A stretch of 64,000 nt of DNA. It comes from Oculina patagonica (Eukaryota). A program made the position numbers and the translations under genes. This document shows, in pieces, positions 28,001 through 31,000 of the stretch (the first letter of the stretch is position 1; every line of letters begins with the position of its first letter). Below the pieces are notes generated by a model. The model had not been told where the DNA came from and ran no database searches. It worked only from the letters and a program-made list of their open reading frames with translations. The DNA lies in assembly GCF_052425735.1 (NCBI RefSeq), contig NC_135768.1, forward strand, positions 4,154,001 through 4,218,000, in the 5' to 3' direction.

Positions 28001-31000
28001 GACTTTCCGAGCTCCCTGTTGCACAGGAGTGGGATCAAACCCTGGAGGAGTACGAAAGAATGGTAGCACCAAAACCTAGGGACTACACACGCCGCACTAA
28101 CGATTGTAAAAGAATGCAACAATCAGTGGCTTCTGCAAGCAACAAATGCGAAAACAGAATGATTAGGAAAGGATTGAGGAACACCCCCCATCTGTTTATA
28201 ACATTGGCGAAAAAGTTCTTATTCGATACCCCCCAGCAAAGAAAATCTGTAGGAAGAGGTGCGTGTTGCATGCTAAAGTCATTAAGAGAAACTTACAGAC
28301 ATGCAAGTATCTTGTTAGGTTTAAATATCCAGCCGGGTCATCAAACTTACTAAAGAAGTGGATTCCAGTTAATGATATCACCAGCACAACACTCGATAAA
28401 GAGAAAAGAAAGAGGGAAGTTGCTTGTAACCGAAATAAGAGGAACCATCGCCAGAAATACTATATCCCTATGGAAAACGATAGACAGTTATTTTCGAGTC
28501 GAATCTCAAATCAGAGGCTAGCCGTCCGATTTGATCCACCCAAGGATGGGAACTGTCAATTCTCTGCACTTTGCCATCAGCTGACTCAAATAGGCATATT
28601 TCGATCCCCAAAAACTTTAAGGGAAGAGCTGGTAGAGTATTTGCGGACACACCCTGATGGTGCTGATGGATTCCCACTGGAGCTGTTTGTCAGCTTACCC
28701 TGGGATGAATACTTAAAATCAATGGCTTGTGATGGAACGTATGGGGATCACTTGACACTACAAGCTGCTGCGAACGTCTTTCAAATTCAGATAATCGTCT
28801 TCTCGACTCTTGGCCCCTCAGCAACTCAGATAATATCTCCTGTAGGTGGAGATCCTCTTTGTACCGTGTCTCTTGGCCATTTCGCAGAGGGCGCTGGGGA
28901 ACATTATGTAAGCTTATCAGATCTGAGTGACGGTGTCTCACAGCTAAACGATGGCTGCCAACCGTTGGAGGACGAAGAGAGTGGCCAGGATGACAACGAA
29001 AGTGAGGTACAGTTAGATGAAGTCCACTTACAAACAGAGGGAGAAGAGCTAGATCAACGTTATGTTCCGAATGAAAAAGTGCCAGGTCAAGATAGCGGCC
29101 ACGAAGAACACATGTCAAGTCAAGAAAACGACCAGGAGGAACACGTGTCAAGCCAAGAAAACGGCCAGGACAAACACATGTCAGGCCAAGAAGATGGCCA
29201 GGAGGAACACGCGTCAAGCCAAGAAAACGGCCAGGAGAAACACCTGCCGAGCGAAGATAACAACCAAGGAAACGCACAAGGAGACAGCGGACCATTCCTG
29301 AACTGTGATGTATTAGAACGAATTGTAACAATAACATTGGCTATCTCTCCCGCAATGCGTGCTTCTTTACGGACAGTCTCAACGTTCTTCAAAAATATTG
29401 TGGACAAGATTCCTCTGCCCAGAGTGTACATCCCAGAGCTGACAGGTCATGTGCTCCGTATCAGCGTCAGGAAGATAATCTCCATGAAAGGAAAAGGTTC
29501 TGGTGCAGTCTTGGAACTTAAAAACATCATCAAATCAAATAGATGGTCAAATGCTTGGCTGCTCTTAGTGAGCGACAGCCTTGGCTGGTTTTTCATAAAG
29601 TCAATTTACTGGAAGAAATAAGTTTGTCTACATGCGATCCTCGTTCCTTTTTTTTACCACAAAATGTTGTGTTGATGTTAATTCTGAAAATTTCAGTTGT
29701 TGTTAAAAAAACACAGGATACTGTTTTGAAACTGTCAATGTACATAATGACAGACATGCAAAATATGTTTATGTTTAGAAACAAAAGATTCCCGGCCCAT
29801 GTAACCTTTAAAGCGTGAAAAGGCAGATTCCGTTATTACACGCAACATTCGATCAGTCTAGATAGTCCGTACGGACTGCATTTGCGTATATAGGAATTTT
29901 TTTTCGTTCAGTAATTTAATAAAATAAATAAAAAGTTCCAAATTTTGAAGCTGGTCACATACCGAAAACTCATAAAAATAAGCCCCCCTGTATAATAAGC
30001 TCGCCCCGGGATATTAGCCCCCAAAATTCGAAAGCGCAGAAAAGCTTCCTATAAAAAGCCCCATCCGCGTAGCCAATGGACTGTTAGGGTAAGCTATTCT
30101 TTAAGTTGTTTTCTGAGTGTTTAAGCTGTGGTTCCTTCCTATGATAAGCCCTCCGTATAGCTCCTACCGAATATAAGCCCCTTGAAATAGTCCTGCCAAA
30201 TTTGGCATTTGGCTATTGCAATAAAACGGAAATTTTTGATCTAGTCACGTGTTCTATGACGTTTACAGCTTGATTGATAGGTGGCGTTTGTCGGTTCCAA
30301 GTATAGATGCTCACATGTGTACTGCCCCGTAAGGCAAGGACAAAACTGAAGGTATTACATTTTGCGTCAAATTTATTACATTTTGCGTTACTTCAGTCTA
30401 TTACATTTTGCGTCAAAAGTTATTACATTTTGGGTTACCGAGTTTATTACATTTTGCGTCAAAAGTTATTACATTTTGGGTTACTATTACATTTTGCGTC
30501 AAAAGTTATTACATTTCGGGTTACTATTACATTTCGCGTCAATTATTACATTTTGTGGCGTAACAAACCCTAGTGTGTGACCATTCAAATGAAAGCTATC
30601 GAGCAGTACTTCTATGTGGTACTGTTTATTTTGGTGTACAAGGTGGTTCTAACTTAACCTCTGTGGATAAAACCCTAGTGTGTGACCATTCAAATGAAAG
30701 CTATTGAGCAGTGCATTCTTGTGGTACTTTTTATTATGCTGTTCAAGGTGGTTTTATAAAGTAAAATGTGGTGCTGTTCATGTACCACATTTTCCCAAGT
30801 TGAAGTTTCACAATCTTTGTACGTTGGCACCCTGAGAAGTTAAAAACCAACCATGCCATAGATTCCTGGAAATATACCCTTCCCACTGAATACTAACCTG
30901 TCCTCTTCCATCTGCCGCCGCGTTCAGGCGACCCAGCACAGCGTGCACATTACGAGAGCCAGGAGAAGCACGCCTCCCAGGAACCGATCCAACTGCTGGC

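Follow-up and report, generated by a model that had tools for sequence, protein, structure and literature searches.

The window analysed here is a stretch of 64,000 nucleotides from Oculina patagonica (NC_135768.1, positions 4,154,001 to 4,218,000, forward strand). It carries a Ginger-type DNA transposon of 4,618 bp (25948-30565) with terminal inverted repeats (TIRs) of about 270 bp. The coding part is arranged in the order rve integrase, OTU protease, acidic repeat linker, probable F-box and small basic domain. The features are as follows.

25943..25947, no strand: left target-site duplication AACCC, identical to the 5 bases beyond the right end
25948..26221, plus strand: left TIR, first bases TGTTACGCC, from inverted pairs I1 and I4 and end alignment
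25958-26160: subterminal repeats in the left TIR, about 5 units of 40-46 bp, from tandem-repeat analysis
26869..28353, plus strand: ORF 1, integrase-type DDE transposase core, with rve at about 27556-27795 (Pfam rve 2e-09, above cut-off)
28182..28183, plus strand: frameshift, one base missing relative to related copies, from contig comparison
28542..28907, plus strand: OTU cysteine protease, deubiquitinase-type (Pfam OTU 1.3e-12, residues 94-215 of ORF 28263-29621)
29088..29266, plus strand: acidic Q/E/H-rich tandem repeat linker, in frame, about 5.3 copies of a 33-bp (11-residue) unit, from Tandem Repeats Finder
29298..29408, plus strand: probable divergent F-box with L-N for L-P; helix 1 CDVLERIVTITLAI, helix 2 PAMRASLR, helix 3 TFFKNIVDK
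29409..29618, plus strand: small basic alpha/beta domain (beta-beta-alpha-alpha-beta-beta) at the protein end, from alignment A1, the model and pI
30242..30565, minus strand: right TIR, with subterminal repeats at 30353-30555
30566..30570, no strand: right target-site duplication AACCC, from comparison with unoccupied copies of the host repeat

The TIRs were recovered as two inverted pairs, I1 (223 nt, 99%) and I4 (51 nt, 86%). Both ends of the element read TGTTA, which agrees with the TGTNR terminus. Where the host repeat is uninterrupted, at about 30661 and about 44907, it reads GGATAAAACCC and continues directly with T[A/T]GTGTG, which gives a 5-bp target-site duplication; the AACCC assignment refers to a single insertion compared with these two uninterrupted copies. 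No further copies of the element were found within the window. Around an intact 827-aa relative (L002), several inverted repeats overlapped one another and no TIR pair stood out clearly.

ORF 1 is likely to start at the ATG at 27047, and its frame holds only to about 28182. Candidate catalytic residues were picked out by eye as the D of VDLISM, the D of QHDQGSEF and the E of GKVERAH. The second reading frame (28263-29621, 452 codons) contains the Pfam OTU match, including its catalytic motif (DGNCQF) and a His further on (GEHYVS), and its C-terminal end is the tail studied here. Behind position 28182, the contigs of X2, X7 and X22, three further runs, carry an extra A; X1, which is probably the source sample, lacks it. 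The loss of this base places the integrase and OTU halves in different frames, and the frame 3 translation past 28182 continues with EEHPPSVYNIGEKVLIRYPP. Because the window copy is broken by this 1-bp deletion, the C-terminal module is probably not produced here within a full transposase.

The element resembles Ginger1 in its Gypsy-integrase-like rve transposase with an OTU domain behind it, in its TIRs (up to about 270 bp in Ginger1) and in its TGTNR termini, and Ginger1 is known from cnidarians and other invertebrates. It differs in its 5-bp AACCC duplication, since Ginger1 elements have 4-bp CCGG/CCGT duplications (Bao, Kapitonov and Jurka 2010, PMC2836005). The Ginger2/Tdd group has an integrase-like transposase with no GPY/F or YPYY, TGTNR termini, and a duplication of 4 bp in animals or 5 bp in TDD-4/5; OTU is not among the domains given for Ginger2 (PMC2836005). 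The duplication length and the apparent absence of GPY/F would suit this group, but the OTU domain and the apparent absence of an H2C2 finger would not. No YPYY, H2C2 zinc finger or GPY/F was seen by eye in ORF 1 or in the SH3-like stretch past the frameshift. The extra domains named for Ginger1 are OTU, Ulp1 and PHD only, and neither an F-box nor a further C-terminal module is among them (PMC2836005).

A first-pass annotation had pointed to an F-box-like pattern at the transposase C-terminus, followed by a small basic domain ending IKSIYWKK. The translation of 29292-29621 on the plus strand (PFLNCDVLERIV ... IKSIYWKK, then stop) matches the peptide noted there exactly. The window tail matched no Pfam F-box family (PF00646 or PF12937) at E≤10 when scanned as 452, 112 or 122 aa, and phmmer against the PDB sequences returned nothing at E≤10. 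Querying a word index of proteins with the window ORF (region 335-452) and the relative P0059 (region 740-868) brought back only the queries themselves, and this index is too insensitive here. The single-sequence AlphaFold model of the 112-residue tail was unusable (pLDDT 37). Judged by the letters of the window alone, the F-box resemblance is not above chance; it is raised above chance because the module is conserved.

The HMMER search identified 244 cluster representatives related at E≤1e-3, including 76 at ≤1e-10. These similarities show the module to be homologous across more than 240 protein clusters. The match ends at the protein end, or a few residues short of it, in nearly all relatives. 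All 12 relatives of at least 500 aa contained OTU (P0067 weakly), and nine contained rve as well. Compared with a related copy, dN/dS was 0.19 for the module (0.20 for the F-box part and 0.16 for the small domain), 0.13 for OTU and 0.31 for the repeat linker, the least constrained part measured. The C-terminal module is thus under purifying selection, with dN/dS of about 0.2.

The near-invariant columns of the alignment are L16, I24, L39, V42 and F46. We read them as the core F-box positions: Leu of the LP pair, Ile in helix 1, Leu in helix 2, Val of VS/VC, and an aromatic residue that replaces W. The family consensus is LP..(D/E)(V/I)LE.II ... P.(M)R..L..V(S/N/C).(F/Y)F...V. Among the 53 aligned members, the hallmark L was present in 50, P in 32, I in 52, V in 51 and F in 50, and the four hallmark positions L, I, L and V were each kept in 48-52 members. 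The first-pass annotation had described both the LP and the W as substituted. This applies to the window copy, which has LN and Phe, but most relatives (32/53) retain the canonical LP, while Phe in place of Trp is a family-wide trait (50/53). Asn in place of the hallmark Pro occurs in the window copy and its clade; the LN members form one group in the tree (support 89/94), and all other deep lineages have LP. From this distribution, the LN of the window clade is read as the derived state.

Pfam profiles (24,736 models scanned) recognised the F-box in relatives of the window copy. PF00646 was matched by 16 of the 53 aligned members and PF12937 by 10, at the same columns; the profile search suggested by the first-pass annotation thus gave no match for the window copy itself but did for part of its family. 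The matches span profile positions 2-40 at the aligned place, and the best E-value was 5.5e-7. Only two members, P0147 (29.7 bits) and P0050 (21.1 bits), pass the curated cut-off of 20.5 bits; the window copy is connected to P0147 at E 1.9e-6. When members were scanned singly, 10/10 matched an F-box at the aligned place and no other family was recurrent. Against the PDB sequences, the best match of the F-box-only family profile was the F-box of FBXO4 (E=0.91), an alignment in which the module has three extra residues between helices 1 and 2. The whole-module family profile found no F-box in the PDB sequences; its best match, Mediator subunit 9 (E 0.02), was rejected as spurious, being without structural support.

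AlphaFold run on the family alignment A1 gave a pLDDT of 91.5, with uniformly high confidence over the whole 110 residues. Helices 18-31, 33-40 and 44-52 (pLDDT >90) lie at the positions of F-box helices H1-H3, as expected for the three-helix fold. In a structure search of 48,161 PDB chains that did not rely on Foldseek, ranks 1-5 were COI1, FBXO42, FBXL17, FBH1 and Skp2, each matched at its own F-box and all of them F-boxes in SKP1 complexes. These superpositions covered 38-41 residues (model residues 12-56) at an rmsd of 1.9-3.0 and Z 3.8-4.5, and VIA Z-scores of 3.0-4.5 lie within the range that can mirror common helical arrangements. The Z-scores are low because the F-box motif is short. 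F-boxes made up 12 of the top 50 PDB chains, including Legionella AnkB and cyclin F, and giant-virus F-box proteins made up 12 of the top 50 in the BFVD search. Foldseek against the PDB gave no significant match, and the highest-placed F-box came 37th (E 1.5). The Hsp90 N-domains that dominated the Foldseek PDB matches of the whole model were meaningless (rmsd 17-19).

The small basic domain was modelled with strands 57-59, 67-71, 101-107 and 112-120 and helices 72-79 and 84-93. It contains the conserved motifs PxIYI, SVRxL, GxxSG, WxxAWL and GWFxIxxIxW. The basic tail has a pI of 10.6 in the window copy and a family median of 10.2 (range 9.1-11.7), so the small basic domain first noticed in the letters is real. 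Its structural matches were weak, thioredoxin-like or mitoribosomal (Z≤3.7), and it belongs to no recognised type.

The data indicate that the first half of the module is very likely an F-box by homology and fold, given the profile matches of the relatives and the predicted three-helix fold. The F-box-like pattern that had been noticed in the window is thereby supported by three independent checks: the Pfam matches of relatives, the model and the SKP1-complex F-boxes at the top of the structural ranking. The first-pass annotation had spoken of F-box mimicry; we take the tail to begin with a homologous F-box and not a mimic. For the module as a whole, we favour the reading that a Ginger-type cut-and-paste transposase ends in a diverged F-box plus an alpha/beta domain, basic and about 70 residues long, and we consider this reading probable.

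It is unlikely, but worth serious attention, that the fold derives from an F-box and no longer binds SKP1. The helices would then cap a self-contained basic domain that serves the transposase itself, for instance in contacts with DNA or the subterminal repeats, in multimerisation or in control of the OTU domain. The strongly basic character of the module, the uniformly high confidence over all 110 residues, the change of Pro to Asn in the window clade and of Trp to Phe across the family, and the failure of the family profile to reach any PDB F-box significantly would all fit such a scaffold. However, the near-invariant L, I, L, V and aromatic residues are the F-box-defining positions, and the best structural matches are all F-boxes complexed with SKP1. 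In addition, LP is retained in 32/53 diverse members, and a mere scaffold would not be expected to keep an exposed LP.

A chance resemblance, in which a conserved transposase domain of another type has amphipathic helices that happen to look like an F-box, is very improbable. Three-helix arrangements are common, the window copy has no Pfam match, the Z-scores are low and the Foldseek E-values are not significant. Chance would nevertheless have to explain a homologue at 5.5e-7, 16 matches to one family at one place among all the Pfam models, and F-boxes that fill the first five structural ranks and occur 12 times among the top 50 of each of two independent libraries. We give still less credit to the idea that the module is a piece of a host gene, captured recently and carried along with no role in transposition. 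In its favour, neither rve nor OTU was detected within 4 kb of the module at two loci (P0050 in L003 and P0147 in L004/L005), these are the best-scoring members against the Pfam F-box, and capture of ubiquitin-system domains by Helitrons, among them OTU and an F-box-associated domain, has been reported (PMC11417382). Against it, the fusion is in frame and at the same position in transposases diverged to 30-40% identity, and purifying selection on the module is no weaker than on the remaining protein (0.19 vs 0.13 for OTU). Any capture must therefore be old, and the domain has since been retained.

Returning to the diverged F-box, we believe that binding to SKP1 is somewhat favoured for the lineages that keep LP. 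For the LN clade of the window, we put SKP1 binding slightly short of an even chance. If it binds, the F-box would dock the transposase on host SKP1 and hence on the SCF (SKP1-CUL1-RBX1) ubiquitin ligase. The target would be brought by the small basic domain or by the DNA-bound integrase itself, and the OTU domain would strip ubiquitin again, so that the enzyme could both write and erase ubiquitin where it acts. The possible targets include the spent transposase complex, repair factors and chromatin, and the OTU domain may also shield the receptor against SCF auto-ubiquitination. We tentatively propose, while leaning a little towards doubt, that this whole lineage of DDE transposases is a self-contained ubiquitin-editing machine, with the F-box as SCF substrate receptor and OTU as eraser. 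Such a machine would couple transposition to targeted ubiquitination, with the spent strand-transfer complex (marked for removal), repair factors or insertion-site chromatin as candidate targets. If this is true, recruitment of an E3 ligase by a transposase via its own F-box would be seen here for the first time.

Canonical F-box proteins such as Skp2, FBXO4, FBXL17 and COI1 share with the tail a motif of about 40 residues (L-P, a helix 1 that closes with I/L-I, a helix 2 led by Pro, and a helix 3 of the form V-S/C-x-x-aromatic), as well as a superimposable three-helix fold and another domain downstream. F-boxes are typically N-terminal to a large substrate-binding domain and not 70 residues from the C-terminus. 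The tail module, in contrast, ends an enzyme of about 850 residues, its downstream domain has just about 70 residues, and it carries Phe for Trp, Asn for Pro (window clade) and the 3-residue insertion after helix 1.

FBH1 serves SCF as a receptor at sites of DNA damage, where it targets RAD51. This F-box DNA helicase (PDB 9xzj, structural rank 4) is the nearest functional analogy, being likewise a DNA-processing enzyme with its own F-box. However, FBH1 is a host helicase and not a transposase, has no deubiquitinase and shows no sequence relationship outside the F-box. A20/TNFAIP3 combines an OTU deubiquitinase and a ubiquitin-adding function in one polypeptide, via a zinc finger rather than an F-box and SCF. 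Its likeness to the logic proposed for the transposase would be a functional analogy only, and A20 is unrelated to mobile DNA. Legionella AnkB, the giant-virus F-boxes and the Helitron captures are likewise cases of parasitic or selfish entities with F-box or ubiquitin-system domains, and AnkB and Pandoravirus F-box proteins were among the structural matches of the module. These are separate proteins or loosely associated domains, whereas the Ginger F-box is fixed in a DDE transposase across a lineage.

The presence of OTU and Ulp1 on Ginger transposases had led to the unproven idea of ubiquitin or SUMO signalling in transposition (PMC2836005). In the literature, we found no description of an F-box on a Ginger transposase, and this conserved tail of integrase-plus-deubiquitinase transposases seems not to have been described before. 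A conserved F-box beside OTU makes the ubiquitin idea concrete and testable, as a transposase that would plug into SKP1/CUL1 with its own eraser. The F-box reading names a specific partner (SKP1), points to residues that can be changed (L-P and the helix 1 Ile) and offers a small domain for target screening. It also adds a divergent F-box subfamily whose members are mostly missed by current profiles. When relatives of transposase length (about 600 aa or more) were scanned whole, the F-box was matched in 0/11, so the F-box is undercounted in domain surveys of transposable elements.

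The last ~110 residues of the transposase (29292-29621, + strand) were read in the first-pass annotation as an F-box-like motif followed by a small basic domain. Translation reproduced the quoted peptide, which ends in IKSIYWKK and a stop codon. The features of the element are as follows.

25948-30565: whole element, 4,618 bp
25948-26170 and 30343-30565: TIR core arms, 99% alike
25943-25947 and 30566-30570: target-site duplication AACCC, flanking both ends
26869-28353: rve integrase ORF (Pfam 2e-09), upstream of the OTU ORF and in a different frame
28263-29621, + strand: ORF of 452 codons with an OTU cysteine protease in the middle (Pfam 1.3e-12) and the module as its tail
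29409-29618: compact basic domain (model residues 53-122)

In a full HMMER search of 1.84 billion representatives, the 112-residue tail matched 244 proteins at E ≤ 1e-3, and for 76 the match reached ≤ 1e-10. Nearly all 244 end at the match end or a few residues past it. The OTU domain was upstream of the module in 12 of 12 relatives of at least 500 aa (weakly in one), rve was also present in nine of these, and most of the shorter relatives scanned carry OTU. The consensus of the 53 full-coverage members (alignment A1) is LP...LE.II, seven variable residues and P.MR..L..VS.FF...V in the first half, and P.P.IYI, a variable loop, SVR.L, G..SG, R.II, W..AWL.L and GWF.I..I.W in the second. Compared with the copy at locus L001, a metagenome contig 78% identical, dN/dS was 0.19 for the whole tail, 0.20 for the F-box part, 0.16 for the small C-terminal domain, 0.13 for OTU and 0.31 for the linker. 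The tail is functional and under selection within the transposase. Another relative, P0073 (NCBI MES9901347.1), is an rve-OTU-module protein of 616 aa; its 3.8-kb contig is assigned to a Sedimenticola sp. MAG, where the protein is annotated as hypothetical. The most likely origin is DNA of a eukaryotic host that was binned with the bacterium.

The expected F-box profile match was obtained for some of the relatives at the aligned columns, but not for the window copy, whose tail matched no Pfam family at E ≤ 10 and no PDB sequence. Among all 53 A1 members, 16 matched PF00646 and 10 matched PF12937, and no other Pfam family recurred. In ten members scanned singly, the matches fell at the aligned place and covered profile positions 2-40. 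Two relatives exceeded the 20.5-bit cut-off, P0147 (5.5e-7, 29.7 bits) and P0050 (2.9e-4, 21.1 bits). The top PDB sequence match of the F-box-only family profile was the FBXO4 F-box, which was not significant (E 0.91). Five first-half columns are near-invariant (L 50/53, I 52/53, L 48/53, V 51/53, F 50/53). After the first L, 32 of 53 members have P; D/E, V/I, L and E come next, and Pro heads the second helix in 39 of 53. By our own reading, these columns are an F-box signature in which Phe replaces Trp. P0050 (L003:4001-4348) and P0147 (L004/L005:4001-4441), the best Pfam F-box scorers among the module members, carry the module as a short ORF, and neither rve nor OTU was detectable within 4 kb. 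These ORFs may represent the module as it exists in a host or donor, or else remnants or derived genes that stand alone.

The AlphaFold model on A1 (m9160bcb22bd0; pLDDT 91.5, pTM 0.77) contains the three F-box helices at 18-31, 33-40 and 44-52, followed by beta-beta-alpha-alpha-beta-beta, so that the anticipated three-helix fold was recovered. Foldseek against the PDB gave no significant match. In an exhaustive VIA-align search over 48,161 chains, ranks 1-5 were COI1, FBXO42, FBXL17, FBH1 and Skp2, each matched at its F-box (Z 3.8-4.5, rmsd 1.9-3.0 over 38-41 residues), and the top 50 also included FBXL5, FBXL2, Fbw7, cyclin F, Legionella AnkB and Fbl10. Giant-virus F-box proteins made up 12 of the top 50 matches in the viral library (BFVD). 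Individual Z and E values are weak, as expected because the motif has only 40 residues; the clustering of F-boxes at the top of two libraries is not expected by chance. The C-terminal module is conserved, under selection and fused behind OTU; the relatives' Pfam matches, the AlphaFold helices and the VIA-align ranks show its first half to be an F-box in both homology and fold. The best BFVD match was A0A516KYS9, an unnamed 95-residue viral protein (E 0.049, probability 0.98, 87 columns, TM 0.50 on target), and it reaches beyond the F-box part.

The noted substitutions of LP and W also held, as LN in the window copy and Phe for Trp in the family signature. In the unrooted maximum-likelihood module tree, 19 LN members, the window included, and one LD member form one group (support 89/94), and all other deep lineages are LP. 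Given F-box homology, LP is likelier to be ancestral and LN a conserved derived state. The small basic domain is compact in the model and has a pI of 10.6 in the window copy (family median 10.2), in agreement with the earlier description; its structural matches are weak, thioredoxin-like or mitoribosomal (Z ≤ 3.7).

Auto-ubiquitination is common among F-box proteins. FBH1 is a DNA helicase with an F-box, and A20 combines OTU with ligase activity; both are functional analogies for this transposase. In the proposed mechanism, the F-box would let the transposase dock on SKP1/CUL1/RBX1, a target would come from either the basic domain or the integrase bound to DNA, and OTU would trim ubiquitin from that target or from the transposase. 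The main rival is that the fold derives from an F-box, has lost SKP1 binding, and now helps to form a domain that binds DNA or protein.

The extra domains listed for Ginger elements are OTU, Ulp1 and PHD, and F-box is not among them (PMC2836005). We found no paper with both Ginger1 and F-box in a search that left most subscription journals and Repbase Reports outside, and this silence is not proof. Helitrons are reported to have captured OTU, UCH, Ulp1 and an F-box-associated domain (PMC11417382). A 2025 study described host F-box genes that capture transposase domains (PMC12062965), whereas the direction is opposite here, with an F-box on a transposase.

TIR matching extends further, to 26221 on the left and 30242 on the right. 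The terminus TGTTACGCC is present at both ends and fits TGTNR. Each arm has about five subterminal repeats of 40-46 bp (25958-26160 and 30353-30555), their unit built on CAAAATGTAATA, which are plausible candidate transposase-binding sites. The element is inserted in a host repeat, some 110-120 bp long (~25830-25947, 30566-30790, ~44890-44960), which is tandem at the right flank and found again at ~44907. Its copies served as the empty-site control: two uninterrupted copies read GGATAAAACCC, then at once TAGTGTG or TTGTGTG, and therefore the target-site duplication is 5 bp. The element shares an rve transposase with OTU, long TIRs and TGTNR ends with Ginger1 (Bao et al. 2010, PMC2836005). However, its duplication is the 5-bp AACCC, in contrast to the 4-bp CCGG/CCGT of Ginger1; 5 bp is known only in TDD-4/5 of Ginger2/Tdd (PMC2836005). 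The H2C2, YPYY and GPY/F motifs were not seen by eye in the window copy. Because of this mismatch and the motifs not seen, we call the element Ginger-type without a subgroup. By the 2010 definitions, its lineage may be intermediate between Ginger1 and Ginger2 or separate from both.

In the window copy, OTU has both the Cys and the His catalytic motif. A one-base shift separates the integrase frame from the OTU frame close to a C run at about 28186-28193; the two halves entered all searches separately, each in its own unaltered frame, and the N runs at 18916-19575 were excluded. When public-run contigs were aligned to the window, copies from three further runs, of which two are metagenomes and one is a possibly RNA run of another organism, had one extra A behind 28182, which was absent from the run best containing the window. 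With the extra A, both halves are in one frame; therefore, the window copy has a 1-bp deletion, and the relatives encode one ~850-residue protein, in agreement with the 827-868 aa of full-length relatives. The linker between OTU and F-box is acidic and Q/E/H-rich, with an in-frame 33-bp tandem repeat of ~5.3 copies (29088-29266). In a copy from public run X22, 150 other letters replace 28950-29108, immediately upstream of this repeat, and the linker therefore differs among copies here. Some of the runs that contain the element are labelled coral metagenome, and its host is therefore probably a reef coral or an organism closely associated with one. Runs X2-X5, labelled viral metagenome, contain nearly half of the element's words, which seems more likely to reflect carried-over host DNA than transport by a virus.
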